Sequence record: MT135026.1
Direction: 5' to 3' (one strand)
Length of the DNA stretch: 64,000 nucleotides
Each line of letters begins with the position of its first letter. Within the stretch, counting starts at the first letter, position 1. Shown here in pieces: positions 37,344 to 52,112 of this stretch. The position numbers were made by a program, and so were the translations under genes. Below the pieces are notes generated by a model. That model did not search any database. It saw only the letters and a program-made list of their open reading frames with translations, and was not told the origin of the DNA.

Positions 37344-37610
37344 ATGTCACAACAAACTCCAGAACAAGTAATCGAACAGAAAGACGCGCAAATCAAAGAT
37401 CTGAAAGTTCGTACATTTGACTTGCAAGAAGCACTTCAAGCTGAACGCAATTCATTTGGTCAATTCGTTGGTGTACTAGCTCAACTGCTAGACTTCGATC
37501 AAGAAAAAGCAAGTTCTCTACAGAACTATGTTGATGAAGTCGCTTATCTAACCGGTAAAGCTGAACGCCCTGTAGAAGGCGACGGCGAAAAAGAGAAAGA
37601 AGCTGAATAA
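37344..37610 (+). CDS. 57A: Tail fibre chaperone gp57A
   Basis: 88 aa acidic coiled coil (LKVRTFDLQE) between gene 1 and 57B. Confidence 0.8.
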   Translation: MSQQTPEQVIEQKDAQIKDLKVRTFDLQEALQAERNSFGQFVGVLAQLLDFDQEKASSLQNYVDEVAYLTGKAERPVEGDGEKEKEAE

Positions 37611-38715: not shown

Positions 38716-38730
38716 CGAGAGTATATTGGT

Positions 38731-38853
38731 CGAGTGTTGGTGTAGTGGCAGCACACGTAGCATACTGTAATCAGACATGATTATATTCAGCAACCAATTT
38801 ACGCATATCATAGGGAGATCGTGGGAACGGTTCGATTCCGTTACACTCGACCA
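38731..38853 (+). ncRNA. Interrupted tRNA-Pro(AGG)-like gene; 49-nt insert (38758-38806) between positions 28 and 29
   Basis: Removing the insert gives CG|ATC-ATAGGGA-GATCG; acceptor CGAGTGT/ACACTCG, A73, CCA, T arm AACGG-TTCGATT-CCGTT. Confidence 0.8.
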
Positions 38854-39120
38854 ATGTACTCTCACTTATTAAGCGAGGTGAGCAATTTGATTGTATATCT
38901 TCTCGCACTGGTATTCATAGTCCTCTTTGCCTTGGACATTGAAGAAGAAACGGTGCGTAGCTGTTCTACGCTAATCACATGCGAACGGGTCATTCATCCC
39001 GTAATTAAAGCGCACGATTCCAGATTGTGTTGTGATTAGCTAAGGCAAATATAAACTAGAGGATTTTGTGCTTGCGTAGTGAAGAATCGATCTGCGTAAG
39101 CACGCCCAAGAACATATTGA

Positions 39121-39243
39121 GCAGGGTTGGTGTAGTGGCTAGCACACGTAGCATAAACGCAAACTGTTAAGTTTGTATTCTGCAATCAATTCGCATATCA
39201 TTTCAAGATCGTGACGCAGGTTCGAATCCTGCACCCTGCTCAA
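39121..39243 (+). ncRNA. Interrupted tRNA-Glu(TTC)-like gene; 48-nt insert (39149-39196) at 28/29
   Basis: CG|ATC-ATTTCAA-GATCG; acceptor GCAGGGT/ACCCTGC; no encoded CCA. Confidence 0.8.
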
Positions 39244-39255
39244 TATGTTTTTATG

Positions 39256-39368
39256 GTGAAGTTAGTTCAGTTGGTTAGAATGCCGGCCTAAACAATAGAA
39301 GTCTGTTAAGATTTCATGCTGCATTTTATGCACGCCGGAGGTCGCAGGTTCGAGTCCTGTACTTCACC
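39256..39368 (+). ncRNA. Interrupted tRNA-like gene (Asp-type body, loop reconstitutes as CT-TGC-AC); 39-nt insert in the anticodon loop
   Basis: CCGGC-CT|insert 39290-39328|TGCAC-GCCGG; T arm GCAGG-TTCGAGT-CCTGT; junction ambiguous; no CCA. Confidence 0.75.
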
Positions 39369-39378
39369 CTCAAATTCT

Positions 39379-39502
39379 GGAGAGTTAGCTCAGTCTGGTA
39401 GAGCAAAAGAATGTTAAAGAATACTGACAAGCATTCATGCTGCAAACCTTAATAACTAGGTAAATCTTTTGGTCGGTGGTTCAAATCCATCACTCTCCAC
39501 CA
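39379..39502 (+). ncRNA. Interrupted tRNA-Tyr(GTA)/Asn-like gene; 47-nt insert in the anticodon loop
   Basis: AAAGA-AT|insert 39413-39459|GTAAA-TCTTT; acceptor GGAGAGT/ACTCTCC, CCA. Confidence 0.78.
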
Positions 39503-39516
39503 ATTTTCGAGGTTTT

Positions 39517-39885
39517 ATGAATAAGTTTGATGACATAAATGACGAACTTGATTGTATCTTGCATCGCTGTGAGATTGTAAAACGCAATCTTCGAAAATAT
39601 TGTACATTTGCTGTTGAAATGCAGTACAGACTTATGATAAACTTCATCGGTATGGGTTGCTATCAACAAGTACTCCCTATATTAGATAATCTAAATCATC
39701 ACCCTGATACTAGTCAGCTTGATAACATTGAGATTATGCAATCAGTAAAAGAACTGATGAAATGCGCGGGTAAGCTAGATGTTCTACATCAACAAGACGC
39801 TTTTCATCAAATGAAATCGACTGCTTTGATTGTAGAAGAAGCAAACATCTTCGCTGCTAAAGTTGGTAGATTTCTAGAGAAATAA
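39517..39885 (+). CDS. Hypothetical protein in tRNA cluster
   Basis: GAGG SD, ATG 39517, fills the gap between two tRNA-like genes. Confidence 0.75.
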   Translation: MNKFDDINDELDCILHRCEIVKRNLRKYCTFAVEMQYRLMINFIGMGCYQQVLPILDNLNHHPDTSQLDNIEIMQSVKELMKCAGKLDVLHQQDAFHQMKSTALIVEEANIFAAKVGRFLEK

Positions 39886-39886
39886 T

Positions 39887-39964
39887 GGCCCTATAGCTCA
39901 ACTAGGTTAGAGCAACCGACTCATAATCGGTAGGTTACAGGTTCGAGCCCTGTTGGGGTCACCA
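39887..39964 (+). tRNA. tRNA-Ile2/Met (CAT)
   Basis: Cloverleaf, ACCGA-CTCATAA-TCGGT, GGCCC acceptor like Ile2, encoded CCA. Confidence 0.92.
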
Positions 39965-39983
39965 AATTAAATTGAAAAAGTTG

Positions 39984-40012
39984 TTGACAGGCGTTTCGTC
40001 AACGTGTAGTAT
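39984..40012 (+). promoter_or_regulatory. sigma70 promoter
   Basis: TTGACA-17-TAGTAT. Confidence 0.8.
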
Positions 40013-40042
40013 ACACATTATCAACTACACGAGGAAAACATT

Positions 40043-40273
40043 ATGTCACATAAATTGCTAGTTATCACTTCGATGCATGGTTACTCTGTTGATTCTGATT
40101 TCAGAACTGCAATGTTTAACAAATACATGTGTGATGTTGTGATTCCGGATGACGCTGTTGTTTTGTACTCAGGTACAGTTTCAATAGATGAAATTCAAGC
40201 AATTGCGAATGAATGTTACGCTGACATCAATATTGAAGAAGTTGATGATGATGTATTTGACAGCTATCTTTAA
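40043..40273 (+). CDS. Hypothetical acidic protein
   Basis: GAGG SD, downstream of a sigma70 promoter. Confidence 0.75.
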   Translation: MSHKLLVITSMHGYSVDSDFRTAMFNKYMCDVVIPDDAVVLYSGTVSIDEIQAIANECYADINIEEVDDDVFDSYL

Positions 40274-40280
40274 ATAAAAT

Positions 40281-40520
40281 GCCGCTAACTGGTGTACAAT
40301 ACGCAGTGTTTTCCCAACATTAGTGCAGACATAGGTTCGCAACCTGTGTTGGTACCGAATCACTGGGACCGAGTAGAAAGTGCGTGTGAGTTGTCGAAAG
40401 CTCACACGTAGAAATAACGCTCGAATGCTCCGAAATGCTGATTAGCTCTTACTTCGAAACTCTAATTGGGTGGACGAGGTGTTGTGTTTGACGTGTGTTC
40501 GATTCACACGAGCGGCGCCA
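40281..40520 (+). ncRNA. 240-nt RNA with tRNA-like ends (tmRNA-shaped)
   Basis: GCCGCT/AGCGGC acceptor, G73-CCA, GAC + GTGTG-TTCGATT-CACAC T arm, exit helix ACAATAC/GTGTTGT. Confidence 0.7.
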
Positions 40521-40533
40521 AGAGGAAATTATA

Positions 40534-41055
40534 ATGAAACCATTGAAATTCGCACAAGCGTTTTCGAAAGAAGAACGCGCTGCAATGTCTCCTGAAGTAC
40601 GCAATAAACTGCGTGCTGAGTATAACGCTCGTTACCAAGAGTACATTGACAAGCACGTTAACGTGTACGTACGAAAAGATTTTCGACGTGAGCGTTGTTG
40701 GGTTATTCTTGCTAGATGTAAGAAGACTGGTAAAATTGTCGGTGAGATTGAAAACAGCTTCAGTATGGGCTGGTCTAAGGAGCGAGTGCGTGTTATTCGA
40801 CCGTACCTCGGGCGTGTCTTTGCAAGCAATGAACGCTTCTCTAAAGCTGATTACAACAAAGCTTGTGCAGAGTATATCGCTAACTACGATAAGCGCGTAA
40901 AGGAGCTTAGAGAGCGTTACAGCGAGACTCACGATGTCTTTATCGCTCGTGTGGGGAGTAAGAACTGTCCTATTGCTATTGATTGGGGCACGTTCTATAG
41001 CACAAAGAACAAACGAAACTTTGACTGGCGTAATTTGAAGTTCAAAGTTAAATAA
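40534..41055 (+). CDS. Hypothetical basic protein
   Basis: GAGG SD, ATG 40534 just after the 240-nt RNA. Confidence 0.75.
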   Translation: MKPLKFAQAFSKEERAAMSPEVRNKLRAEYNARYQEYIDKHVNVYVRKDFRRERCWVILARCKKTGKIVGEIENSFSMGWSKERVRVIRPYLGRVFASNERFSKADYNKACAEYIANYDKRVKELRERYSETHDVFIARVGSKNCPIAIDWGTFYSTKNKRNFDWRNLKFKVK

Positions 41056-41060
41056 TTCAT

Positions 41061-41176
41061 AGTCGGGTAGCTCAGTGGTAGAGCACGAAGAATGATACTG
41101 ACAAGTATCGCTCCAGCACTCCTTCAATTGCCTGTTAAGCACGTGGTCGCTGGTTCGAATCCAGCCCCGACTACCA
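41061..41176 (+). ncRNA. Interrupted tRNA-Asn(GTT)-like gene; 41-nt insert (41088-41128) at 28/29
   Basis: CG|TGC-CTGTTAA-GCACG is a perfect arm once the insert is removed; acceptor AGTCGGG/CCCGACT, CCA. Confidence 0.82.
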
Positions 41177-41201
41177 ATTTTAATAACAAGTGAGGTACAA
41201 C

Positions 41202-41435
41202 ATGAGTTTTGACATCAATAAAACTTTACTGACTCCGAAACAACTGCATAATCTAACGGACGAACGTCTGAACGAATATCGCAAGTCGTTTCGCAAACCT
41301 CTTGGGTTCTTGAAGCATCTGAATGACACTAACGAGTTGACTTCAGATCAACACAAGAAGTATGTTGAACTGAACCGCCATTACAACGATGAAATTCTCG
41401 TTGAAATGAACAAGCGAAAACACCTAGGTCGATAA
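41202..41435 (+). CDS. Hypothetical protein
   Basis: GAGGT SD, ATG 41202. Confidence 0.7.
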   Translation: MSFDINKTLLTPKQLHNLTDERLNEYRKSFRKPLGFLKHLNDTNELTSDQHKKYVELNRHYNDEILVEMNKRKHLGR

Positions 41436-41804
41436 GAAAATCGCAGAAAATTGAATTTTTTTTTCAATTTTCTGCGAAAATACCGCAAATCGTCAAATTT
41501 GGTGTTATAAGTACTATTATACAAACAAAAACATTTTTATTTTAACGTTTAGAGAGTTTCCATGACACATTCGAATACACATTCTGATATGATTTTACGC
41601 AGCGATTTTCTGCGCTCAGAATTCGTGTATCTAGCGAATCCGTGTGCGAAACAAGAGTGGTCTCCACAAACGTAGTCCAATAGTATAACATAGAAGTATA
41701 CTTGAGGACGCACGTAGCGTCCTTTTTTATGGGCGAAGAAAAATCAAAAATTTTGTTTAACGTACTTTGAAAGCAGAGTATGATAAACAAAGTTAAAGAA
41801 CAAA

Positions 41805-41878
41805 CGGGACGTGGCGTAAAGGTAGCGTTCATGCTTTGGGAGCATGTGGTAAGAGTTCGAGTCTCTTCGTCCCGACCA
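41805..41878 (+). tRNA. tRNA-Pro (TGG)
   Basis: CATGC-TTTGGGA-GCATG, C1-G72, A73, CCA. Confidence 0.93.
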
Positions 41879-41887
41879 ATTTAAAAT

Positions 41888-41964
41888 CCGTGACTAGCTC
41901 AATCTGGTAGAGTACTCCGTTTGGGGCGGAGAAGTTAAGCGTTCGAATCGCTTGTCACGGACCA
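41888..41964 (+). tRNA. tRNA-Pro (TGG), second copy
   Basis: CTCCG-TTTGGGG-CGGAG, CCA. Confidence 0.93.
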
Positions 41965-41971
41965 GTTTAAT

Positions 41972-42047
41972 GCCCGATTAGCTCAATTGGAAGAGCAGCG
42001 CCCTACGAAGGCGAAGGTTACAAGTTCGAATCTTGTATTGGGTGCCA
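41972..42047 (+). tRNA. tRNA-Arg (ACG)
   Basis: GCGCC-CTACGAA-GGCGA, CCA. Confidence 0.93.
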
Positions 42048-42050
42048 TAT

Positions 42051-42178
42051 TTCAGAATGCCTAGAAATGGGGAAATGCAGAGTTGCAACATACTCGGTAG
42101 AGAATAATTGATAGCCTCTGGCAACAACTGTTAGTTTACGCTATTACTCGAAGTGAGTTCAAGTCTCACCATTCTGAA
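42051..42178 (+). ncRNA. ~127-nt tRNA-like RNA
   Basis: TTCAGAATG/CATTCTGAA stem, T arm GTGAG-TTCAAGT-CTCAC, non-canonical middle, no CCA. Confidence 0.65.
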
Positions 42179-42343
42179 TTGATTTGATACGCTTAGGACC
42201 GTATCTCGTTAAGTACTGTCGTGATGATAGAATTTAACGAACTTTTTCACAAATTAGTGTTTAAGATGTCTTGATCGAGTGTTAAGATTAACACATAGAA
42301 AAATGAAAACGTTAAGTTCTTCAAAATAAATTCAAAAAAAGAT

Positions 42344-42373
42344 GTTTACAACGATATAAACATCATGTACAAT
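42344..42373 (+). promoter_or_regulatory. Early-type promoter for the tRNA sub-cluster
   Basis: GTTTACA-17-TACAAT with an A-tract upstream. Confidence 0.78.
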
Positions 42374-42400
42374 GAAGAAAAGAAGTTTACAAAATTTAAT

Positions 42401-42477
42401 GCGCATGTAGCCCAATTGGCAGAGGCACTGGTCTTAGAAGCCAGAAGTTAAGAGTTCGACTCTCTTCATGCGTACCA
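42401..42477 (+). tRNA. tRNA-Leu (TAG), short variable arm
   Basis: CTGGT-CTTAGAA-GCCAG, variable region AAGTT, A73, CCA. Confidence 0.9.
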
Positions 42478-42478
42478 T

Positions 42479-42553
42479 GCACCCTTAGCTTATCAGGAAA
42501 AGCGGCGGATTGAAGTCCCGCAGTGCTCGGTTCGATTCCGAGGGGGTGCACCA
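42479..42553 (+). tRNA. tRNA-Phe (GAA)
   Basis: GCGGA-TTGAAGT-CCCGC, CCA. Confidence 0.88.
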
Positions 42554-42559
42554 CATTCT

Positions 42560-42633
42560 GGGTCTATGATGTAATGGTAGCATATGGGACTTTTAATCCT
42601 TCAGTCAGAGTTCGAATCTCTGTGGACCCACCA
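42560..42633 (+). tRNA. tRNA-Lys (TTT)
   Basis: TGGGA-CTTTTAA-TCCTT, CCA. Confidence 0.9.
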
Positions 42634-42740
42634 TATTCAAAGATACTAAAGAGTATCTGTTAGCCTACTAGCTGGGCCCGTTAAATGATTATCTCAGCTA
42701 ACTTGCTAACTTGCTAGTTTGCTAACAAATACTTTTTAAT

Positions 42741-42815
42741 TCTCCCGTGGACTAACGGTAGGTCATCACCCTTTCAAGGTGAAGTGCGCGAGTTCGAATC
42801 TCGTCGGGAGAACCA
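42741..42815 (+). tRNA. tRNA-Glu (TTC)
   Basis: TCACC-CTTTCAA-GGTGA, CCA. Confidence 0.92.
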
Positions 42816-42821
42816 AATTAT

Positions 42822-42907
42822 GGAGCGTATGCGCCAAGGTGGCGCAGGGGACTGTAAATCCCTGACCCTTAACGGGTAGAGAGGTTCGATTCCTCTACGC
42901 TCCACCA
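42822..42907 (+). tRNA. tRNA-Tyr (GTA)
   Basis: GGGGA-CTGTAAA-TCCCT, long variable arm, CCA. Confidence 0.92.
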
Positions 42908-42912
42908 GTTTT

Positions 42913-43000
42913 AGCTTGCATACTGCAATTTAACTTACTCTATTGATCGCTCGACGAACTCAGTTCAGACAGCGATAAACAGACCAAAGAACGCAAGCTG
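42913..43000 (+). ncRNA. CWGCAA-motif RNA (88 nt)
   Basis: AGCTTGC-ATA-CTGCAA ... GCAAGCT-G. Confidence 0.7.
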
Positions 43001-43009
43001 TTGAATAAT

Positions 43010-43086
43010 TGCGGGGTAGAGAAGTGGTCATCTCGTCGGTCTCATAAGCCGGAGAACGCTGGTTCGAATCCAGCCCCACGCAACCA
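43010..43086 (+). tRNA. tRNA-fMet-like (CAT)
   Basis: TGCGGGG acceptor, TCGGT-CTCATAA-GCCGG, CGCAACCA end; one extra A in the 3' acceptor strand. Confidence 0.85.
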
Positions 43087-43093
43087 AATTAAT

Positions 43094-43192
43094 GGAAGGC
43101 TTAGCCGAAAGATTCTGGGTAGCGGCAACGGTCTTGAAAACCGTCGGTCACCGGGAGGTGATGTTAGGGTTCGAATCCCTAGTCTTCCGCCA
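43094..43192 (+). tRNA. tRNA-Ser (TGA)
   Basis: ACGGT-CTTGAAA-ACCGT, long variable arm, enlarged D loop, G73, CCA. Confidence 0.88.
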
Positions 43193-43256
43193 ATTAGTTA
43201 ACCGGGAAGTTTAGTCACTTAACCGATTAACACGAGCACTGAAATGTGCTCACTTT

Positions 43257-43330
43257 AGCTCCATAGTTTAACGGTAAAACACGCGACCGATAATCGCACG
43301 TTGACAGTTCGAGTCTGTCTGGGGCTACCA
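43257..43330 (+). tRNA. tRNA-Ile (GAT)
   Basis: GCGA-CCGATAA-TCGC (C33), CCA. Confidence 0.88.
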
Positions 43331-43337
43331 AATTTTT

Positions 43338-43411
43338 AGGGGCATGATGTAAAGGCAGCATGACGGATTCCAAACCCGTTCGTTAGAGTTCGAATCTCTA
43401 TGCCCCTGCCA
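43338..43411 (+). tRNA. tRNA-Trp (CCA)
   Basis: ACGGA-TTCCAAA-CCCGT, G73, CCA. Confidence 0.9.
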
Positions 43412-43427
43412 ATTATCAGAGGTGTTT

Positions 43428-43616
43428 ATGTACAGACTAGTGATGGTAATGAATGATTCGACTGTTGTCAAGTCGAGCGCATTAGCTTGTGACAATAACA
43501 AATCTGAATTCGGTTACGAAGATCGCTCGATTGAGCGAAAGGCTAAAATGTTAGCTAAACGAATCGAAAAGTTTGACGATGTTGACTCTTGTAAAGTTGA
43601 GAAGTTTACATCGTAA
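43428..43616 (+). CDS. Hypothetical protein
   Basis: GAGGTG SD, ATG 43428, between tRNA-Trp and a motif RNA. Confidence 0.65.
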   Translation: MYRLVMVMNDSTVVKSSALACDNNKSEFGYEDRSIERKAKMLAKRIEKFDDVDSCKVEKFTS

Positions 43617-43623
43617 CAGAATT

Positions 43624-43683
43624 AAGCAATCTTTCAGCAAACAATACAAAACTTTTATTTGGAAAAAGAGAAAAGGATTGCTG
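43624..43683 (+). ncRNA. CWGCAA-motif RNA (60 nt) with an anticodon-like hairpin
   Basis: AGCAATCT-TT-CAGCAA ... CTTTT-ATTTGGA-AAAAG ... GGATTGCT-G. Confidence 0.7.
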
Positions 43684-43694
43684 TTTAATTTAAA

Positions 43695-43769
43695 GGGTGT
43701 GTAGCTCAGAGGCAGAGCAGACGGCTGTTAACCGTCAGGTCGAGATTTCGAAATTCTCCACGCCCGCCA
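43695..43769 (+). tRNA. tRNA-Asn (GTT)
   Basis: GACGG-CTGTTAA-CCGTC, G73, CCA. Confidence 0.92.
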
Positions 43770-43775
43770 TATTTT

Positions 43776-43851
43776 GCCTTATTAACTCAGTCGGTAGAGT
43801 GTCTGGCTGTTAACCAGAGAGTCGTTGGTTCGAGTCCAACATAAGGCGCCA
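43776..43851 (+). tRNA. tRNA-Asn (GTT), second copy
   Basis: TCTGG-CTGTTAA-CCAGA, G73, CCA. Confidence 0.92.
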
Positions 43852-44073
43852 GTTTGACCATGACAATGTTTGAGAGCGTTGGTTGCGATGTCTGCTTGTG
43901 TGCAGAGATTTGAAACCTCCTGCATAGCAAGATCTCACTTTCATAGCATTTGTTAAAAACAAGAACGATGATGCCCTTTAGCGAGGGAATGCGTAGTACA
44001 ACTAAGAAATCAAGAAGTCGTTCAGCTAGTGTTTGGTTTGCACGAGCACAAAGCAACGTTAAGTTGTCTTTGG

Positions 44074-44149
44074 GGAGCCGAGGTGTAAGTGGTTGCATGT
44101 CTCCCTGTCACGGAGAAGGTAGCGGGTTCGAAACCCGTCGGTTCCGCCA
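44074..44149 (+). tRNA. tRNA-Asp (GTC)
   Basis: TCTCC-CTGTCAC-GGAGA, G73, CCA. Confidence 0.92.
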
Positions 44150-44168
44150 AAGATAATTTAAGAATAAT

Positions 44169-44242
44169 AGGGGATTGATGTAAAGGCAGCATACGTGACT
44201 TTGACTCACGCAGTACCGGTTCGAATCCGTTATCCCCTGCCA
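44169..44242 (+). tRNA. tRNA-Gln (TTG)
   Basis: CGTGA-CTTTGAC-TCACG, G73, CCA. Confidence 0.92.
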
Positions 44243-44250
44243 AATACCGA

Positions 44251-44367
44251 AGAGTGTTTTCAGCAAACAATTTACTAATATTCTTCTGATGAAAAGAAAT
44301 GTTTGGGGTTCGATTCCCTTTCAGTGTTGGTATCACTGGTCTGGACGACGCAAGTAATAACACTCAG
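44251..44367 (+). ncRNA. CWGCAA-motif RNA with anticodon-like and T-arm-like hairpins
   Basis: GAGTGTT/AACACTC stem; TTCTT-CTGATGAA-AAGAA; GGG-TTCGATT-CCC. Confidence 0.72.
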
Positions 44368-44371
44368 TAAC

Positions 44372-44447
44372 GCCCTGATAGCACAACTGGCAGTGCAGCT
44401 CACTTGTAATGAGCAGGTTCGCGGTTCAAATCCGTGTCAGGGCACCA
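44372..44447 (+). tRNA. tRNA-Thr (TGT)
   Basis: GCTCA-CTTGTAA-TGAGC, CCA. Confidence 0.93.
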
Positions 44448-44472
44448 TTTTCTAAACAACTGTGAGAATAAC

Positions 44473-44682
44473 ATGAACTATATTTCAATATGGTGTGAAT
44501 ATGACATTGGTGGCTATTTCGGTGGCAACAATAACGAAGATGCTTTTTCCGTTGATGAAAAACTATCTGATGAAGAAATTGAAGCAAAAGTTGCTGAATA
44601 TATTTCTGATATTGTTGGTGAGCCGATTGAAGAGCTTGAAGGTCTATACGGCTGGGATCATATTTCAATCACACAGTTGTAA
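44473..44682 (+). CDS. Hypothetical acidic protein
   Basis: ATG 44473 with GAGA SD, between tRNA-Thr and tRNA-Ala. Confidence 0.65.
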   Translation: MNYISIWCEYDIGGYFGGNNNEDAFSVDEKLSDEEIEAKVAEYISDIVGEPIEELEGLYGWDHISITQL

Positions 44683-44689
44683 TAATTAT

Positions 44690-44764
44690 GGGCCGTTAGC
44701 TTAATTGGGAAAGCGCCTCACTTGCAATGAGGAAGATAGGGTTCGACTCCCTGCGTGTCCACCA
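44690..44764 (+). tRNA. tRNA-Ala (TGC)
   Basis: CCTCA-CTTGCAA-TGAGG, G3:U70, imperfect acceptor stem, CCA. Confidence 0.85.
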
Positions 44765-44841
44765 AATTTCGATCACATGAGTGTAGAGTCTCTTTACTAC
44801 CATCTTCTACGCAATAGCTCATGGATCGAATTCTTTTCAAC

Positions 44842-44917
44842 GTCCTCATAGCTCAATTGGAAGAGCAACGACCTTCTAAGTCGTGGGTTGTGGGTTCGAA
44901 TCCCTCTGGGGATGCCA
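44842..44917 (+). tRNA. tRNA-Arg (TCT)
   Basis: ACGAC-CTTCTAA-GTCGT, CCA. Confidence 0.92.
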
Positions 44918-44978
44918 GATTAAGCTCTATCATGCGGCGAATGATACTTGCTTCGGCATATCACGAGCATGGTTTGAG

Positions 44979-45193
44979 AGACAATATACAGCAACAAATT
45001 AAAATCTTACTAAAAATGGTAATGATCTTAACCTGGGCAGTGCTTCGGTGCAGCTTGAAAGGAAAGATTCTCTCTGCCTAGAAATAGTCAGATAGGCGCG
45101 TCGCTGAAACAGACGATATTTGCTTGTTGAGAAGCAACAAGATAGTCAACTCCGATTCATGTTAAAGACGAAAAAACACTTCGGTATTGTCTG
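44979..45193 (+). ncRNA. CWGCAA-motif RNA (215 nt)
   Basis: AGACAATA/TATTGTCT stem; shares internal blocks with 47221-47467. Confidence 0.75.
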
Positions 45194-45422
45194 TACTTAA
45201 TTCGTCGGAAACGACACTACAGCCGAAAGGCACGATATGCTAACTCAGTTAGCCGTGATACAGGAAGTATCGCGTGGCATTATTATGAACGTTTCTAGTT
45301 ATCGTCATGTAAAACAATCAAAACTAAGATGAGGTAATAGTACCCACTATGTGGTTCCTCGCTCAGACCATGAATATATGGTGTCAGCCCGTGTGCGATT
45401 AAATGAGTTAATTACTACTTTT

Positions 45423-45498
45423 GGAGATGTAGCTCAAGTGGTAGAGCAATGGTCTCATAAGCCATTAGATCCGATTTCGAGTATCGGTGTCTCCACCA
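45423..45498 (+). tRNA. tRNA-Met (CAT), elongator-like
   Basis: ATGGT-CTCATAA-GCCAT, A73, CCA. Confidence 0.88.
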
Positions 45499-45523
45499 AA
45501 TTCAAGCAAAGAGGATAAGAAGC

Positions 45524-45681
45524 ATGACTACTTTACACTAAGCAAGGGCAACATACGCGATAAGATTCGCTGTGTTGAAAATCGTCTCGCGAAAGAGACC
45601 AACCCGTTCTTTATAAGAACACTTACTGTAGAGCTTACGAATCTGCGTGCAATACGTGATTTGTTCGACGCTTCAGATTAA
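45524..45681 (+). pseudogene. Possibly frameshifted small ORF
   Basis: SD GAGGA + ATG 45524 reads MTTLH-stop, while the long open frame (TLSKGNIRDKIRCVE...) is a different frame. Confidence 0.4.
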
Positions 45682-45685
45682 CAAT

Positions 45686-45759
45686 GCGGGTATGATGTAA
45701 TGGTAGCATGACGTCCTTCCAAGTCGTTCGTCTCGGTTCGAGTCCGTGTACCCGCTCCA
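45686..45759 (+). tRNA. tRNA-Gly (TCC)
   Basis: GCGGGTA acceptor, CTTCCAA loop, U73, CCA. Confidence 0.92.
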
Positions 45760-45764
45760 ATTTT

Positions 45765-45838
45765 GGTCCCTTAGTATAATGGCAGTACGTCTCTTTTACA
45801 CAGAGAAAGAAGTGGCTCGATTCCACTAGGGACTACCA
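45765..45838 (+). tRNA. tRNA-Val (TAC)
   Basis: TCTCT-TTTACAC-AGAGA, CCA. Confidence 0.9.
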
Positions 45839-45861
45839 TTCTTTATGATGAGAAATAAATT

Positions 45862-46101
45862 ATGACGCCTGTATTACTTGAAACTCACGAATACGTAAAT
45901 CAAAACCAAATTGAAAAACTGAAACGCATGGACAGACTTATGTTTGACTGTTGGCGCGCTGGTTATAAACGCGGTAAGATTTTAGAACGTGCTCTTGAAA
46001 TTGAGTCTTCAACAACTTCTGATGACATCGAAATTTATTTCAAAAATATGTTTACGAGAGAGCTATCGCCTGATAGTATCTACTTAAAGAAAACTGATTA
46101 A
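45862..46101 (+). CDS. Hypothetical protein
   Basis: 79 aa ORF filling the Val-His tRNA gap. Confidence 0.65.
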   Translation: MTPVLLETHEYVNQNQIEKLKRMDRLMFDCWRAGYKRGKILERALEIESSTTSDDIEIYFKNMFTRELSPDSIYLKKTD

Positions 46102-46155
46102 TGCACAGGGAGCGCATTCGTTTGATGTCGTAAACATCCCAAAGTGTACTTTGGT

Positions 46156-46232
46156 GTGGCAGTGGGTGAAGTGGAAATACCCCCGGGTTGTGATTCCGGA
46201 AGATGCGGGTTCGATCCCCGTCTGTCACCCCA
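46156..46232 (+). tRNA. tRNA-His (GTG)
   Basis: CCGGG-TTGTGAT-TCCGG, C73, CCA. Confidence 0.88.
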
Positions 46233-46335
46233 AAGTGCATTTAGCGAAAAAAGCATTGTAGTAGCGCATGGGAATTCTGAATGCTTGAAATACCCATTAA
46301 GATCGCCAGTAGCTCATGCAATGCACTAACATATT

Positions 46336-46409
46336 GCCCGAATCGTATAATGGAAGTATGAGGGATTGCAAATCCCGCGGTCAGAGTTCGATTCTCTGTT
46401 CGGGCTCCA
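46336..46409 (+). tRNA. tRNA-Cys (GCA)
   Basis: GGGA-TTGCAAA-TCCC, U73, CCA. Confidence 0.92.
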
Positions 46410-46411
46410 AT

Positions 46412-46488
46412 GCGCACGTGGTCCAATTGGCAGAGGCATGAGGCTTAAAATCTCAGGGATGGCGGTTCGAATCCGCCCGTGCGTACCA
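46412..46488 (+). tRNA. tRNA-Leu (TAA), short variable arm
   Basis: TGAGG-CTTAAAA-TCTCA, variable region GGGAT, A73, CCA. Confidence 0.9.
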
Positions 46489-46603
46489 AACTCTAGCATA
46501 AGCCGCGTTCTACACGAAGCTAGACTACCGCCGTTGAAAACGGTCTCAGCCGGGCGAAAGCTGACAGGCGTTAGGGATTAAAGAGTTGCGGCAGCTTATT
46601 CAA

Positions 46604-46680
46604 GCCCAACTAGGCCAATTGGCAGAGTCGCTAGTTTCAAACACTAGAAGTTCCGAGTTCGAATCTCGGGTTGGGCACCA
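46604..46680 (+). tRNA. tRNA-Leu (CAA), short variable arm
   Basis: CTAGT-TTCAAAC-ACTAG, variable region AAGTT, A73, CCA. Confidence 0.9.
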
Positions 46681-46902
46681 AATTCACTTAGCAACGCGAA
46701 TCGAAAGAGAGTGAATAGACCGTACGACACTATGGTCTTAAAAGAAGATATAGCTGAAAGGCTATGTGTAGACCTGCTAAGAGTCCCGCTGGTCGTTAAA
46801 TTATCAAAAGGGATCTGCGAAGCGCGTGGCACACGCCAGCAATAAGAGCAAATATGTGTCTGAGCATGAGAGCAGCATGCCACTGTTTAAAAGTCGTTCA
46901 GT

Positions 46903-46910
46903 TATAAATA
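46903..46910 (+). promoter_or_regulatory. T4-type late promoter
   Basis: TATAAATA upstream of the 59-aa ORF. Confidence 0.8.
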
Positions 46911-46935
46911 CAATAAACTAACTGAGGGATGACAA

Positions 46936-47115
46936 ATGAAACTTAAAACGTTTGATGAATATCACAAGCTTGTTGAGAAAGTCGAGAAGCGTGGCGACAA
47001 ATGGGTTGCTCTTTCATCTAAAGGTCGAGTACTTGGTACTCATGACACTGAGAAAGAAGCCAACGCGCAAATCGCTGCTGTCGAGATTAGCAAAGCAGAG
47101 CGTGGTAAGAAATGA
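46936..47115 (+). CDS. Candidate internal head protein (59 aa)
   Basis: Not in ORF track; MKLKTFDEYHKLVEKVEKRGDKWVALSSKGRVLGTHDTEKEANAQIAAVEISKAERGKK; TATAAATA at 46903-46910, GAGG SD, capsid-targeting-like N-terminus. Confidence 0.7.
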   Translation: MKLKTFDEYHKLVEKVEKRGDKWVALSSKGRVLGTHDTEKEANAQIAAVEISKAERGKK

Positions 47116-47120
47116 TCTAC

Positions 47121-47209
47121 GGAGATATGGTCTAAAGGTATGACAGCACCCTGCTAAGGTGTCGGACGTTAATAGCGTTCTCTGGGTTCGATTCCCAGTA
47201 TCTCCGCCA
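47121..47209 (+). tRNA. tRNA-Ser (GCT)
   Basis: GCACC-CTGCTAA-GGTGT, long variable arm, G73, CCA. Confidence 0.92.
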
Positions 47210-47220
47210 AATTCGCAATA

Positions 47221-47467
47221 AGACATTGTACAGCAATATTACTAATCAAAGAAGCAAACTTTAATAGTAATGAGGCGCACTAGCTGCTTTCTCAGTGATG
47301 ACGTGAGCCTGTCGCATTCTCGTGGTAGGAAATGACCATTAAGACGGTGTTCGTACTGTAAAACGAAATAGGTCTCATGCCGAATCATGGGTATTTTCTC
47401 GATGAGAAACATCGAGATAGTCAATTGAGATTTAAGCAAAGACGATAAAACACTTCTCGAATGTCTG
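47221..47467 (+). ncRNA. CWGCAA-motif RNA (247 nt)
   Basis: AGACATT/AATGTCT stem; AGATAGTCAA and AAAGACGANAAAACACTTC blocks shared with 44979-45193. Confidence 0.75.
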
Positions 47468-47482
47468 TGTATTGCACATTAG

Positions 47483-47507
47483 AACCTGCCTTGAGCAGGT
47501 TTTTTTG
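47483..47507 (+). terminator. Terminator closing the tRNA cluster
   Basis: AACCTGC-CTTGA-GCAGGTT followed by a T-run. Confidence 0.85.
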
Positions 47508-47554
47508 TTTATAGCGCATGATAAATCATGTACAGTCATTATGAGGTGATAACT

Positions 47555-47932
47555 ATGTACAAATCAAACAAACGAACATCAATATCCAAAATGAAGCGCG
47601 TCGCTGAAATGCCAGACTCAGAGATAATCTTTACCTTGAGTCGTTATGAAAATATTGACGGCGTGACAATCAAAAGTTCAAATACACTTAACGCAGTAGT
47701 GGTACGCGGATTGTTTCTGTATCGCACTGTAAGCGATTATTCACAGACATCCGAACAAAGACGTTGTGAACGTATTGAATTCGACTCAGACACTGCTCTA
47801 GAGCGTTATATGAACCTTCACACACGAAAGCGAAAACGATTCACGCTTGATGATGTACTTTACGGGACTGAACGCTGTCGCTTCGAAAATGAATTTGATG
47901 TGCAGTTGAGCCGAAAACACATTTTCTCATGA
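47555..47932 (+). CDS. Hypothetical protein
   Basis: GAGGTG SD, ATG 47555. Confidence 0.7.
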   Translation: MYKSNKRTSISKMKRVAEMPDSEIIFTLSRYENIDGVTIKSSNTLNAVVVRGLFLYRTVSDYSQTSEQRRCERIEFDSDTALERYMNLHTRKRKRFTLDDVLYGTERCRFENEFDVQLSRKHIFS

Positions 47933-47969
47933 CTAAATACAAATGAACTCAATTAACTGGAGATAGGTC

Positions 47970-48176
47970 ATGAGTGAGAAAACCTTTGACAAATTCATGT
48001 CAGAAATCGAAGAGTCGCGCCCAGAAGACAAAAAGAAAAAGAAACGTTCTGTAAAAGATCGTATCAAGTCGGGCGCTAAAAAAGCCGGTAAGGCGGCAAA
48101 AACAGGTGCTAAAGTAGCTGCTGGTGTTGCTGCTGTTGGCGTAGCAAGACAAGTAACAAAGAAATCTAACGAATAA
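47970..48176 (+). CDS. Candidate internal head protein, Lys-rich
   Basis: MSEKTFDKFMSEIEE N-terminus, ACTAAATA upstream, very basic body. Confidence 0.65.
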   Translation: MSEKTFDKFMSEIEESRPEDKKKKKRSVKDRIKSGAKKAGKAAKTGAKVAAGVAAVGVARQVTKKSNE

Positions 48177-48406
48177 TGAAAAACATTCATCAAAAATCTC
48201 ATGCGCGTGAAGGGCGCGGTTTAGGTAATGGTTTTAACGATAACTGGCGAAATGCTTCGCTTTGGAAAAACATCGGTCCCGATGCTGAAAAAATCAAAAA
48301 GGAAGCTGAAGAACCCGAAGAAGAAATCAAAGAGGTGAAACAAGAAAATTTGGAAGATTTATCTGAACGCGAACGTATGCGCCGTTTGATGCGTCTAGCA
48401 CACTAA
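48176..48406 (+). CDS. Hypothetical protein
   Basis: TAATG-coupled to the previous gene. Confidence 0.7.
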   Translation: MKNIHQKSHAREGRGLGNGFNDNWRNASLWKNIGPDAEKIKKEAEEPEEEIKEVKQENLEDLSERERMRRLMRLAH

Positions 48407-48430
48407 CCTCAGATTGGCGTAACTCTCAGT

Positions 48431-48476
48431 GGGAGATATGTGGTCAAGGCAATGGGTTCGATTCCCGTGTCTCCCG
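48431..48476 (+). ncRNA. tRNA minihelix-like remnant (acceptor + T arm only)
   Basis: GGGAGAT/GTCTCCC, ATGGG-TTCGATT-CCCGT, 14-nt linker. Confidence 0.55.
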
Positions 48477-48504
48477 TATTCTATTAACTAAGAGGTGAAC
48501 AATC

Positions 48505-48717
48505 ATGGAAATACTTTCTGAAGATACACTAAAAAGCATGGAACTGTCTGAAGTTTGCAAAGTGCGCAAAGCACTTAATAAATTCATTGCCCGCTTACGC
48601 AAAGATTTTCGACAATTCCAGTGCAACCGAGTTGATGAGAAATACTACAAAGAGCATCTTATGTACTCCACGATTGTAGATCGAATGATCGAAAAGAAGT
48701 TACGCCACTCACATTAA
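48505..48717 (+). CDS. Hypothetical protein
   Basis: GAGGTG SD; followed by a terminator. Confidence 0.7.
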   Translation: MEILSEDTLKSMELSEVCKVRKALNKFIARLRKDFRQFQCNRVDEKYYKEHLMYSTIVDRMIEKKLRHSH

Positions 48718-48720
48718 ACA

Positions 48721-48750
48721 AAAAAGCCCCAAAAACGGGGCTTTTCTTTT
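48721..48750. terminator. Bidirectional terminator
   Basis: A-run, AAAAGCCCC/GGGGCTTTT, T-rich tail, between convergent genes. Confidence 0.8.
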
Positions 48751-49120
48751 ATAGCTTATGTTGAATCATTAGCTCATGCAATCCCTCAACGGCAAAGTCG
48801 TTGAGTCTATCGAGTTCAATGTCTAGTTTATCCATTGCCTGAACTAGCTCTTGACTAATTCCTTTCTTGTATCGCAGCTTGTTAATTATCTTCTTGGCAT
48901 CGAGCACATTCATTTTGATGTGTTCGTAGTTGAACCGTACGGCTTCGTATCGGTATTTGTTTTGCTTTGCTTTCTGTTCGATGTGCAGAAGCTTGGTATG
49001 CATCTTAGCTAGTTTCTTTATGCTGCGTGCATCTTCACCTGCCTTATATCTAGCCCATTGCCTTTCAAACCACCCTTCATTTAGATATTCATCAAAAGAA
49101 ATAATTTTTTCGTCGTTCAT
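48749..49120 (-). CDS. Candidate internal head protein
   Basis: MNDEKIISFDEYLNE N-terminus; GATAAATA upstream on the minus strand. Confidence 0.6.
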   Translation of the reverse strand: MNDEKIISFDEYLNEGWFERQWARYKAGEDARSIKKLAKMHTKLLHIEQKAKQNKYRYEAVRFNYEHIKMNVLDAKKIINKLRYKKGISQELVQAMDKLDIELDRLNDFAVEGLHELMIQHKL

Positions 49121-49182
49121 GTTGACTTCCGTTTGTTGAACCTGTATGATGTATTTATCAACACTAACGAAAGAGAAATATT

Positions 49183-49539
49183 ATGTACGTTATGATTGAT
49201 GATCTGCGTGATATTAATAAGTTCACGTCAGATTACGTACGTGATGATGAAAAACTCGTACTTCGAACATTCGAAGACGGTATGAATTTCGTCAAGCACA
49301 CAAATCTAACTGACATCACGCTATTCATGGATAACGATCTAGGTGATGATGTTGGTAGAGAGGGATACGATATTCTCTCTCATGCGATTGATCATCGTAA
49401 TTTTCCGCGCACTGTTGTTCTAGTGACAAGCAATCCTGTTGGTCATAGTAAAATGGCTCTGTTGCTTTCTCACTCTGGTCAGTATAAGCGCGTTGGTTCA
49501 ATTTTTATGAGGTACGATACATGTCGCACGTCAATGTAA
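49183..49539 (+). CDS. Cyclic-phosphate processing receiver-domain-like protein
   Basis: MIDDLR, RTFEDG, FMDNDLG, EGYDIL, VTSNPVG match the stand-alone phage REC pattern (LDDxR...DHDLG...GYD...HSANPVG). Confidence 0.7.
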   Translation: MYVMIDDLRDINKFTSDYVRDDEKLVLRTFEDGMNFVKHTNLTDITLFMDNDLGDDVGREGYDILSHAIDHRNFPRTVVLVTSNPVGHSKMALLLSHSGQYKRVGSIFMRYDTCRTSM

Positions 49540-49895
49540 TATCGTCTGCTGCTAATGCAATTCGAGTAACGCTACCGAACGGCGAACAGCGAGACATTGT
49601 TGTTGCTGATAGCTGCCATTTCGGTCGAAACATGCAATCAGTCTTTAAGTTATTGAAAGAACTAGGTTGTACATATGAACATCGAAACGAACTCGGTGAT
49701 CGCGGTCAAGGTTTTATCAACTATTGTGGTGAATACTTCAATCGAGCCGATTCCTATGAGATTGCGAAAGAAAGCGGTCAGCCGTTTAATGACGATTACA
49801 CGCTACCAGACATAGATGGTGATGGTCGTAAACGACTTGACAGTTCTTGTATTCGTCACTTTTCTAAGCCGATTAAGGAATATATTGATGGGTAA
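49521..49895 (+). CDS. Conserved phage hypothetical protein
   Basis: SAANAIR...HF...QGFINYCGEYFNRADSYEIAKESGQ pattern. Confidence 0.75.
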   Translation: MSHVNVISSAANAIRVTLPNGEQRDIVVADSCHFGRNMQSVFKLLKELGCTYEHRNELGDRGQGFINYCGEYFNRADSYEIAKESGQPFNDDYTLPDIDGDGRKRLDSSCIRHFSKPIKEYIDG

Positions 49896-50223
49896 TTTAT
49901 ACGATACATTAATTCAAAAAGTCAAACAGAATCGCTCAACTCGTGAAGAACTCTTCGTAGTTGAAATGCGCAAAGCAATCGAACGTAAAATCGGTGGCGT
50001 TGCTGGGTTTCAGTTTCCAATCACGATTCAGGTGAATGTTGACCGCAATGAATGTTGTGATGAAATGATGTCTCTCATCAAAGGCGTCATGCGACGCGAG
50101 GGTTTTCATAACTTCGACGCACAGTTCGGACATTACTCTGGCGATCCGCGTGATATGAGAGATTACTCATATTCTTTTGTCAAATTGACAATTCGAGAAA
50201 ACAAACAAGCGGGGTTTCAATGA
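49888..50223 (+). CDS. Hypothetical protein
   Basis: AAGGA SD, ATG 49888; overlaps both neighbours. Confidence 0.7.
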   Translation: MGNLYDTLIQKVKQNRSTREELFVVEMRKAIERKIGGVAGFQFPITIQVNVDRNECCDEMMSLIKGVMRREGFHNFDAQFGHYSGDPRDMRDYSYSFVKLTIRENKQAGFQ

Positions 50224-50534
50224 TTAATCATAATGAACTCAAACAACAAATTCACGCTCGTGAAGCAGAAGAAAAACGAATTCTTACCGAGCATTACACG
50301 AGCGAATGTGAGAAAGAATTCATGCACGCAGTTGAGTCGGGGTCTAGTTTCCCTATCATCGTGAAAGTGCCTATTCACGCTGCTGATAAAGACAAGCGTG
50401 GTGCGACTATTATTCGTACATTCTTCGAAGAGCATGGTTATCGTTCTCTTCGCACGTCTTACGAAACGGGCGGTCGTGTTCTCGTTGAGATTTACGAAAA
50501 CGGTACGAATCTCACACGAATGAATTTTCGATAA
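50220..50534 (+). CDS. Hypothetical protein
   Basis: ATGA overlap with the previous gene. Confidence 0.7.
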   Translation: MINHNELKQQIHAREAEEKRILTEHYTSECEKEFMHAVESGSSFPIIVKVPIHAADKDKRGATIIRTFFEEHGYRSLRTSYETGGRVLVEIYENGTNLTRMNFR

Positions 50535-50547
50535 AATTGAAAAAAGT

Positions 50548-50576
50548 GTTTACACGGGTTCAAATCCGTGTATAAT
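50548..50576 (+). promoter_or_regulatory. Early-type promoter for the TROVE-like gene
   Basis: GTTTAC-17-TATAAT with an A-tract upstream. Confidence 0.8.
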
Positions 50577-50589
50577 CATCACATCAAAA

Positions 50590-50632
50590 CGACATTTTAC
50601 AGCAATTTAATATGAGGAATAAACAATGTCAG
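50590..50632 (+). promoter_or_regulatory. CWGCAA-motif hairpin sequestering the start codon of the TROVE-like gene
   Basis: GACATT-TTA-CAGCAA ... GAGGA ... AATGTC-AG; ATG 50626 lies in the 3' strand. Confidence 0.75.
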
Positions 50633-52071: not shown

Positions 52072-52098
52072 AAGGGCGGCATTGTGCTGCCCTTTTTT
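52072..52098 (+). terminator. Terminator after the TROVE-like gene
   Basis: AAGGGCGGC-ATTGT-GCTGCCCTT followed by a T-run. Confidence 0.8.
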
Positions 52099-52112
52099 GT
52101 ACAGAGGTGAAA

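Follow-up and report, generated by a model that had tools for sequence, protein, structure and literature searches.

Probable copies of one protein-binding RNA module in the tRNA array of a KVP40-like Vibrio phage, with a DUF2828/DUF7788 protein as proposed ligand

We argue that twelve + strand sites in a 64,000-nucleotide stretch of sequence record MT135026.1 are copies of one protein-binding RNA module, and that the DUF2828/DUF7788 protein encoded at 50626-52062 (+, 478 amino acids) is its proposed ligand. We put the probability of this reading at about 0.7. The whole stretch is called the window here. It is Vibrio phage V09 (100% identity) and is KVP40-like; KVP40 and phi-pp2, with 95-97% identity to the window, are T4-like Schizotequatroviruses. 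Five of the sites are hairpins within tRNA-like RNAs (H1-H5), six are open helices that close RNAs in the tRNA operon (O6-O11) and one lies in the 5' untranslated region (UTR) of the DUF2828 gene. An earlier note on this DNA proposed a Ro60/Y-RNA-like system. That reading gains computational support from the predicted fold of the protein, the linkage of module and gene, the copies in gene leaders and the YrlA-type domains of some of the RNAs.

The module is a helix of 6-8 bp that starts with G. The G strand reads, 5' to 3', (A)-W-G-[5-7 nt helix]-[2-3 nt]-C-W-G-C-A-A, with exactly 8 nt between the G and CWGCAA, and the partner strand reads [helix']-C-W-G. One end of the helix combines a G:C pair that is invariant with a W:W pair and an A/G closure, and N3-CWGCAA is single-stranded on the inner side. 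The two W positions, in WG and in CWG, pair with each other (AU 39, UA 10, GU 2 and other 1 in 52 aligned short copies); the scanner left this pairing free and restricted only the 3' W, to A or T. All five hairpin copies are capped by GNNA tetraloops, which are GUUA, GACA, GUCA or GAUA among orthologs. Open copies have a flanking 5' A and a flanking 3' G at the positions of the tetraloop ends. The earlier note described two circularly permuted topologies; two forms do exist, but they are one helix, either capped or open. A pseudoknot between the loop CWG and the downstream CWG was rejected, as the W positions show no Watson-Crick covariation. Inverted repeats of a transposon were rejected as well because the helix sequence differs among copies.

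The pattern WG-N8-CWGCA is matched exactly by 11 of the 12 sites, and the copy at 50600 has CG, just as first described. Across the whole window the bare pattern has 35 matches where 33.4 are expected. It is not enriched, so the bare pattern alone carries no meaning. The + strand of 38778-47235 (8.5 kb) holds 12 of these 35 matches, namely eleven of the sites plus one at 46863 that lacks a partner strand. When the helix is required this region has 11 matches, against 0.9 +/- 0.9 (maximum 4) in 200 dinucleotide-preserving shuffles in which the partner strand and then WG were demanded. The opposite strand of the region has 2. With its helix the motif therefore stands out from shuffled sequence.

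More than ten different helices occur among the copies. All window copies are kept in KVP40, nt-1, phi-Grn1, VS1, ValKK3 and VH7D, and compensatory double changes between orthologs are found at two of them. In O7 a C:G pair becomes U:A, with GCAATC/GATTGC changing to GTAATC/GATTAC in five related phages. In O10 the change is seen in nt-1, where GGCACA/TGTGTC becomes GGCATA/TATGTC. The claim that the helix varies while its pairing is kept is thus borne out. Two of the partner strands first assigned have to be replaced. The partner of 44989 is not CTCTC but TATTGTCTG at 45185-45193, which gives 7-8 bp, and that of 46837 is TGTGTCTG at 46855-46862, because the compensatory change in nt-1 falls there.

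A second line of evidence is the distribution of the module around DUF2828 genes in other viruses. We took 80 IMG/VR loci (L numbers below denote loci outside the window) chosen only by protein similarity, at 46-55% identity with one at 97%. The gene strand carries 168 module matches and the other strand 31. Restricted to the exact spacing, where G to CWGCAA is 9, the counts are 116 and 3, and other spacings are near background. A copy is present in 65 of the 80 loci and lies within 500 nt of the gene in 46; five further loci score when the 3' W is relaxed. There are 23 elements of ~60 nt at most 100 nt downstream of the gene, typically ~30 nt past the stop codon. L086 has the order gene, short RNA, 260-nt RNA, terminator. 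The helices differ across loci (GGTTCC, GATTCC, GGATAG, GGTTTC, GGATCG, GAATGA, GGAAGG, GAATAC and others). The test can also be run in reverse. We examined 121 IMG/VR matches to AAAGGATNNNTWCAGCAA, 49 with a helix partner and 72 without; a same-strand DUF2828 gene lies within a few kb in 15 of the 49 as opposed to 1 of the 72.

The linkage extends to more distant loci. L156, reached through one of the 121 pattern matches, is a giant-virus metagenome-assembled genome (MAG) with a RING finger protein, DUF5760, DUF2827 and a 595-amino-acid DUF2828 protein. L207 and L208 are giant-virus contigs of 297 and 319 kb that were found through the protein, and they have the same pattern, capped copies included. 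The DUF2828 genes of these nucleocytoplasmic large DNA virus (NCLDV)-type loci encode 566-595 amino acids (L156:9149-11632, L207:10001-12273, L208:10001-12240). Each has 3-5 tandem copies directly after the gene; L156 has four. Scores with our model R1 reach 36.6 bits in L156, 26.5 bits in L207 and 14.3 bits in L208. Some of the tandem modules are hairpins with 6-11-nt loops, and L207 has an adjacent tRNA-Arg. In 25 loci from MAGs and single-amplified genomes (SAGs), with proteins 31-48% identical, matches number 30 on the gene strand and 8 on the other, and a copy lies within ~600 nt of the gene in 13. The proposed co-occurrence of the motif with DUF2828 therefore holds in phages, giant viruses and MAG loci.

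The protein itself belongs to Pfam DUF7788 (1e-45) and DUF2828 (6e-29), and its PHROG 850 label is 'RNA-binding protein'. Its von Willebrand factor A (vWA) domain carries the metal-ion-dependent adhesion site motif DxSxS (D275 S277 S279), which is invariant. We built an AlphaFold2 model from 27 homologs (pLDDT 78.5, pTM 0.76) and compared it with the Protein Data Bank using Foldseek. The top six matches are all Ro60/TROVE chains, with E from 1e-7 to 7e-6 and TM scores of 0.52-0.60. They include Ro60 of the Thermus phage phiLo (9kop, 9l5y) and Xenopus Ro60 (2i91, 1yvr), and the alignments cover ~510-560 columns, the whole length of the model. The next matches cover the vWA domain only, at TM ~0.22. 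This comparison with Ro60, which the earlier note had suggested, predicts a full-length Ro60 fold for the DUF2828/DUF7788 protein, with a HEAT-repeat ring and a vWA domain.

It is worth considering whether a different viral protein could be the binder. Directly after the DUF2828 gene a PF04308 RNase H-like (DUF458) protein is encoded (52107-52637, +), and ~1.1 kb upstream is a cREC_REC (cyclic-phosphate processing receiver) protein (49183-49539, +). L086, a 119-kb freshwater T4-like contig, has its DUF2828 gene in an RNA-repair neighbourhood (3738-7216 and 12989-13546) with a split Pnkp (AAA_33 + HAD_PNKP), a T4-type RNA ligase 1 (Rnl1) and a 2',5' RNA ligase-like 2H phosphoesterase. One can imagine that PF04308 or cREC binds the module, or that the module is a self-acting structural or catalytic RNA, with DUF2828 a bystander. 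PF04308 is also close downstream of the gene in L087, RNA-repair genes cluster nearby, and the known binder of the Class I RNAs of Dictyostelium, compared below, is a protein with an RNA recognition motif (RRM). However, the neighbouring genes change completely among phage, MAG and giant-virus loci, and only DUF2828 stays. Its predicted Ro60 fold is an RNA-binding one, and no ribozyme family was matched. The Rfam searches of the window and loci, for ribozymes, riboswitches and other families, gave only tRNAs at the gathering score; at the E-value threshold the only relevant non-tRNA matches were weak ones to YrlA and Class I. We consider another binder, or a self-acting RNA, quite unlikely.

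The copies in the leaders of DUF2828 genes argue for DUF2828 as the ligand. In the window a sigma-70-like promoter (TTTACA-16-TATAAT, 50549-50576, +) is the best match of its region at 11/12, and the unit ends at a terminator at 52072-52094. The leader module (50590-50632, +) is C-GACATT-tta-CAGCAA-tttaatatGAGGAataaac-AATGTC-AG and starts ~7 nt past the predicted transcription start. The Shine-Dalgarno (SD) sequence GAGGA is in its loop, and the AUG (50626-50628) is within the 3' helix strand AAUGUC. The note was right about CG for WG in this copy, but the copy is not degenerate; it is a complete open module, GACATT...AATGTC-AG at 50591-50632. It is kept in 6 of 6 related phages, and the helix includes the AUG throughout the KVP40 group. 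In L035, L051 and L055 a 32-33-nt module ends 11-16 nt ahead of the gene, directly before the SD, in the layout AAG-helix-N3-CAGCAA-N10-16-helix'-CUG-(A/G)AGGAG. The same pre-SD arrangement is found in the sequences of L034, L074 and L083. The leaders of L040 and L067 are taken up by an entire tRNA-like RNA, closed by a module with the core CCGCAA, and its 3' strand abuts the SD.

Several proteins are known to repress their own mRNA through an operator that mimics their main RNA target: T4 gp32, RegA, the MS2 coat protein on the replicase start, and the ribosomal protein operons. Here, too, the mRNA of the protein has the motif of the proposed target across its SD or AUG. The helix of this leader is weak when unbound (-3.5 kcal/mol). 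We infer that the leader copy is a candidate translational operator of the DUF2828 mRNA. Copies at the SD or AUG of DUF2828 have the layout expected for an operator mimic. They are the most specific pointer to DUF2828 as the binder.

The open copies O6-O11 close RNAs of ~35-246 nt in the tRNA operon, all on the + strand. O6 (42913-43000, 88 nt) fills the gap between tRNA-Tyr and tRNA-Met and reads A-GCTTGC-ata-CTGCAA ... GCAAGC-TG. It scores 17.7 bits with R1 (E 0.08), and its terminal helix is present in the minimum free energy fold. O7 (43625-43683, 59 nt) is the Class I-like copy, A-GCAATC-ttt-CAGCAA ... GATTGC-TG(TT), and scores 47 bits with R1, O7 itself being in the training set. Within the window R1 scores well only O7 and O6 because it penalises long interiors. 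O8 (44251-44367, 117 nt) lies between tRNA-Gln and tRNA-Thr and reads A-GAGTGTT-tt-CAGCAA ... AACACTC-AG; its interior has a T-arm-like GGGGTTCGATTCCCT and then a hairpin, a degenerate YrlA-type layout. O9 (44979-45193, 214-215 nt) is A-GACAATAT-a-CAGCAA ... GTATTGTC-TG, in a region where KVP40 has no annotated coding sequence. O10 (46827-46862) is a mini element of 35-36 nt, T-GGCACA-cgc-CAGCAA ... TGTGTC-TG, with the core CTGCAT in KVP40, nt-1 and phi-Grn1. O11 (47221-47467, 246-247 nt) is a paralog of O9 and the last gene of the tRNA operon. It reads A-GACATT-gta-CAGCAA ... AATGTC-TG, has a fold z-score of -2.2 and is followed by an intrinsic terminator.

The position of these copies raises the possibility that a host RNase or chaperone reads the module as a signal for processing or stability, one that sets the ends of small RNAs in tRNA operons. 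The proximity to DUF2828 would then be incidental, a result of where this gene tends to lie, in or next to tRNA arrays. The open copies do abut tRNAs within 4-12 nt: O6 and O8 have tRNAs at that distance on both sides, O11 starts 12 nt after tRNA-Ser and O7 ends 11 nt before tRNA-Asn. The DUF2828 gene is within tRNA arrays in many loci, and mature Class I RNAs start and end exactly at the module (PMC7919456). However, in many marine and giant-virus loci the module is directly after the gene with few tRNAs near; L156 has none and L207 has one. With hosts from bacteria to protists, a shared host factor is unlikely. The copies at the SD or AUG in several lineages are also hard to explain as end markers. 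We regard a host-read signal as unlikely, and the module as a ligand of DUF2828 remains the reading we prefer.

The hairpin copies H1-H5 are in + strand RNAs that resemble tRNAs in having acceptor, D and T arms; an encoded CCA or near-canonical ends are present in three of the five. The capped module and 20-30 further nt stand in place of the anticodon arm. H1 (38728-38853) has an acceptor stem, a D-like arm and a T arm (GGTTCGATTCC), with the module TGTAATC-AGACAT-GATTATA-tt-CAGCAA at 38766-38793 replacing the anticodon region. It has no match to the Rfam tRNA model at E<=10, and its ortholog in phi-Grn1 is annotated tRNA-OTHER. H2 (39121-39240) is a paralog of H1 with the module GCAAAC-tgttaa-GTTTGT-att-CTGCAA at 39159-39185. 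H3, H4 and H5 are the KVP40 'tRNA-Pseudo-5', '-4' and '-3', which Rfam recognises as three tRNAs, beyond those of ARAGORN, with inserts of 44-54 nt in the anticodon region. H3 (39256-39368, Rfam tRNA 54.6 bits) has GAAGTC-tgttaa-GATTTC-atg-CTGCAT at 39298-39324 in a 44-nt anticodon-loop insert. H4 (39379-39499, 55.5 bits, encoded CCA) has GAATAC-tgacaa-GCATTC-atg-CTGCAA at 39419-39445 in a 49-nt insert; the helix first proposed here (39440) is present but contains one C.A mismatch. H5 (41061-41173, 49.8 bits, encoded CCA) has TGATAC-tgacaa-GTATCG-ctc-CAGCAC at 41093-41119 in a 54-nt insert.

H5 has a second conserved element, CCUGUUAAGC, downstream of the module (41131-41140, +). This element recurs in an Aeh1-like tRNA-like RNA (L056:14131-14140) and resembles an Asn-type anticodon loop or a CUGUU/AAG junction. 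The H design, with a T arm ~31 nt after CWGCAA, is also present in the unrelated large-phage contigs L054 (twice), L056 (Aeh1-like, twice) and L113. A loose hairpin scan gave equal counts on both strands and is dominated by chance, so only copies followed by a T arm are credible.

Could the five hairpin copies be introns spliced from real tRNAs, with the module as a splice signal? The inserts sit in the anticodon loop, and the tRNAscan-type annotation of phi-Grn1 does call intron-bearing tRNA-Cys (the H2 ortholog), Phe, Asn and Val. Against this, the inserts are merely 44-54 nt, and group I introns are far longer. No bulge-helix-bulge motif was seen, and removing the insert leaves no consistent 7-nt anticodon loop. 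The same module also closes free-standing RNAs and occurs in an mRNA leader. Splicing is a very improbable explanation, and we keep to a proposed protein-binding module, capped within a tRNA-like scaffold.

Among known systems the module invites comparison with Ro60 and its Y RNAs (YrlA, RF02553; Yrl1/Yrl2 of phage phiLo). The ends of a bacterial Y RNA pair into a stem whose 5' strand carries GNCGAA(N)G, and the RNA is encoded beside Ro60 on the same strand; the tRNA-like domain of YrlA has the order T arm, closed acceptor-like stem, D arm (PMC4201824). The phage system shares the ring-plus-vWA fold predicted here, multiple small RNAs beside the gene on the same strand, a handle built from the RNA ends with a conserved 5'-strand motif, variable bodies, a few of them outside the window with tRNA-like domains in the YrlA order, and ties to RNA-repair genes. 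In the module RNAs the terminal stem is present and the 5' motif is CWGCAA instead of GNCGAA(N)G. The clearest body is L036:12394-12532, a YrlA-type domain framed by the CWGCAA module that matches RF02553 at full length with 34.8 bits. A second YrlA-like domain at L036:11943-12014 scores 38 bits, and permuted domains are also found in the L040 and L067 leaders. These scores of 30-38 bits do not reach the gathering score of 69. In the window the T-arm-like element is found only in O8, H1-H5 are unpermuted, and the best YrlA score of 29.8 bits merely spans two adjacent tRNA-like genes.

There are also differences. The phage protein is in another sequence family, DUF2828/DUF7788, and a copy of the module is in its gene's own leader. 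The window also has the opposite topology, where the RNA keeps a true tRNA acceptor end and the handle is capped at the anticodon position. With DUF2828 as the proposed ligand, these RNAs would be the Y-RNA equivalents of a second Ro-like ribonucleoprotein (RNP) family.

Another RNA likeness is to the Class I RNAs of Dictyostelium (RF01414). The earlier note had not seen this signature and it is added here. The definition of Class I RNAs by Kjellin et al. 2021 (PMC7919456) comprises a start with AAG, a terminal stem of 6 bp that covaries and whose 5' G is invariant, the 11-mer CCUUACAGCAA, a variable interior, CUGU as the end and a length of ~60 nt. The short phage copies share the AAG start and the 6-bp covarying stem with invariant 5' G, together with a variable A-rich interior, a length of ~60 nt, a CUG(U) 3' end and many clustered copies. 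The phage consensus GGUUCCUUACAGCAA...GGAACCUG contains the 11-mer and has all the positions that are invariant in Class I (U3, C6, C9, A10, A11). In the window the 11-mer of O7 is UCUUUCAGCAA, and some copies carry CUGCAA or differ at position 3. The short length of Class I RNAs is shared by O7, O10 and the leader copy only.

The Rfam model Dicty_Class_I_RNA aligns phage RNAs end to end with 27-31 bits (window 43626-43683, L009 and L036). O7 scores 27.4 bits at full length. The E-values of these matches are already multiplied by 4227 families, and the scores are below the gathering score of 41.5. A sequence-only hidden Markov model of the phage RNAs weakly finds 9 of 16 Dictyostelium copies at E<10 but 1 of 2000 random sequences. 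The sole systematic difference is the register from G to CAGCAA: 116 phage copies have a distance of 9, and all 16 of the Dictyostelium copies examined have 10. The phage RNAs also come with 90-250-nt bodies and as hairpins. Class I RNAs are 42-65 nt and come from eukaryotic genes with the Dictyostelium upstream sequence element (DUSE) promoter, whereas the phage RNAs are viral genes in bacterial-type operons.

Class I RNAs were stated not to be found outside Dictyostelia (PMC7919456), and the link to the phage module appears to be unpublished; our literature search found nothing linking Class I RNAs with Ro60, TROVE or DUF2828. Published mentions of DUF2828 concern mimivirus-like proteins (bioRxiv 10.1101/033464), and several plant studies also name it. 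Among the matches listed in our DUF2828 protein searches there are only viral and metagenomic proteins. A search for DVSGSM in part of the dictyostelid proteomes (the paper's supplement) gave a sole match, to an unrelated Ras/vWA protein. We tentatively suggest, at somewhat less than even odds, that a single ancient family unites the modules of phages and giant viruses with the Class I RNAs of Dictyostelia, that a DUF2828/DUF7788 Ro60-like protein is the common partner, and that the phage tRNA-like versions act in tRNA surveillance or counter tRNA-targeting defences of the host.

It must be noted that several points weigh against DUF2828 as the ligand of a common module. The support is wholly computational. 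Homology to Ro60 rests on an AlphaFold2 model of moderate confidence. The earlier description of the protein as a TROVE-like vWA protein survives in the predicted fold but not in sequence: Pfam TROVE (PF05731) has no match to it at E<=10, and the solved Ro60 chains have no significant sequence match. The phiLo TROVE chain scores E 1.4, over 40 residues of the vWA domain only. The phage handle is G-helix-N3-CWGCAA and not the GNCGAA or GGUCCGA of Y RNAs. In Dictyostelium, direct binding to a Class I RNA has been demonstrated only for Rnp1A, an RRM protein and not a DUF2828 one (PMC7919456). Some gene-bearing loci, such as L087, have no module in the sequence examined. For the RNAs of the window the thermodynamic z-scores, +0.2 to -2.2, are weak, and folding energies alone do not separate these RNAs from shuffled sequence. 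The helix counts are partly a product of a scanner that demands a helix. The controls for this selection are the strand asymmetry, the spacing, the W:W pair, the changes between orthologs and the separately sampled giant-virus and MAG loci.

The phage tRNA array spans 38.7-47.5 kb of the window, with a promoter-like site (42345-42373) ahead of the main array and the terminator at 47481-47503 at its end. ARAGORN finds 27 tRNAs. Rfam adds a further weak tRNA match at 44690-44761 (44.9 bits), missed by ARAGORN, which is the KVP40 'tRNA-Pseudo-1'. The tRNA-Tyr at ~42821-42907 just attains the gathering score of tRNA-Sec, with 47.6 where 47 is needed; its long variable arm is probably the only reason. 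A short tandem run of 8-mers (TTGCTAAC-like) lies between tRNA-Lys and tRNA-Glu (42698-42730, +). Just upstream of the tRNA-like RNAs the 'gp57B' homolog (37610-38065, +) strongly matches Acb1, a 2H phosphodiesterase directed against the cyclic-oligonucleotide-based anti-phage signalling system (CBASS) (PF23474, 1.7e-46).

Outside the window, longer RNAs closed by the module form conserved classes. At least three such classes recur in different phage lineages, and none of them matched an Rfam family. The first, of ~210-250 nt and ending TTGTCCCTTACA-helix, is found at L040:2844-3061, L051:629-834, L055:8529-8753, L083:9410-9660, L074:9067-9319 and L034:7935-8146. The second, of ~95-130 nt and ending GCAAAAACTCGCCAAAA-helix, is at L035:150-281, L040:3134-3233, L051:1266-1374, L055:8965-9059, L067:1411-1519 and L083:9735-9829. 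The third has ~180-260 nt and the helix GGATCG (L042:4794-5033, L044:11788-11970, L076:11438-11667, L086:9538-9797). L036 holds six module RNAs and the two YrlA-like domains, and it has a phage tmRNA at 8605-9054 (RF00023, 75 bits), ~3 kb downstream of its DUF2828 gene.

These parts can be put together as follows. The Ro60-shaped DUF2828/DUF7788 protein would bind the module, which would serve as a handle for a variable body. This body is a tRNA-like scaffold in some RNAs, a permuted tRNA-like domain in others and a different domain of 35-250 nt in the rest. The RNase P and RNase Z cuts that free tRNAs would also free the module RNAs packed between them. During infection the body may bring tRNA-acting or RNA-degrading and repair factors to the protein, or it may gate the protein. 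The 5'UTR copy pairs with the start codon or, in other lineages, abuts the SD, so surplus protein would repress its own translation through it. We infer the binding, the autoregulation and a role in tRNA surveillance, repair or decoy. Salmonella Ro60 has its place in the same operon as RtcB/RtcA. The Salmonella Y RNAs lie in an operon with RtcB/RtcA too (PMC7790460), and the phiLo Ro60 with Y-like RNAs recruits the host PNPase (PMC12135203). The likeliest role, though we would give it rather less than an even chance, is RNA surveillance or repair centred on tRNA, or decoying of host defences that target tRNA. We favour it because the RNAs sit in tRNA operons and mimic tRNA, and because of the repair genes of L086, the cREC protein of the window, the Salmonella operon and the PNPase recruitment in phiLo.

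If DUF2828 is the ligand, DUF2828/DUF7788 would gain a binding partner and a function that can be tested. This uncharacterised protein family is very large, with more than 7000 matches among just 8000 candidates scored, in phages, giant viruses and, according to the literature, plants. In KVP40-type and other large phages the 'pseudo-tRNAs' of the tRNA arrays, and the gaps there that lack annotation, would be accounted for. The Ro60/Y-RNA principle of a common handle with variable effector bodies, some of them mimicking tRNA, would extend to a second protein family, and a viral route of spread between viruses of bacteria and of eukaryotes is suggested. The Class I RNAs of Dictyostelium, which are abundant and developmentally regulated, would gain a first mechanistic lead. 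If the ancient family is real, bacteriophages, giant viruses of protists and eukaryotes would have a second Ro/Y-type RNP system in common, and Class I RNAs would not be confined to social amoebae or bound up with multicellularity as such.

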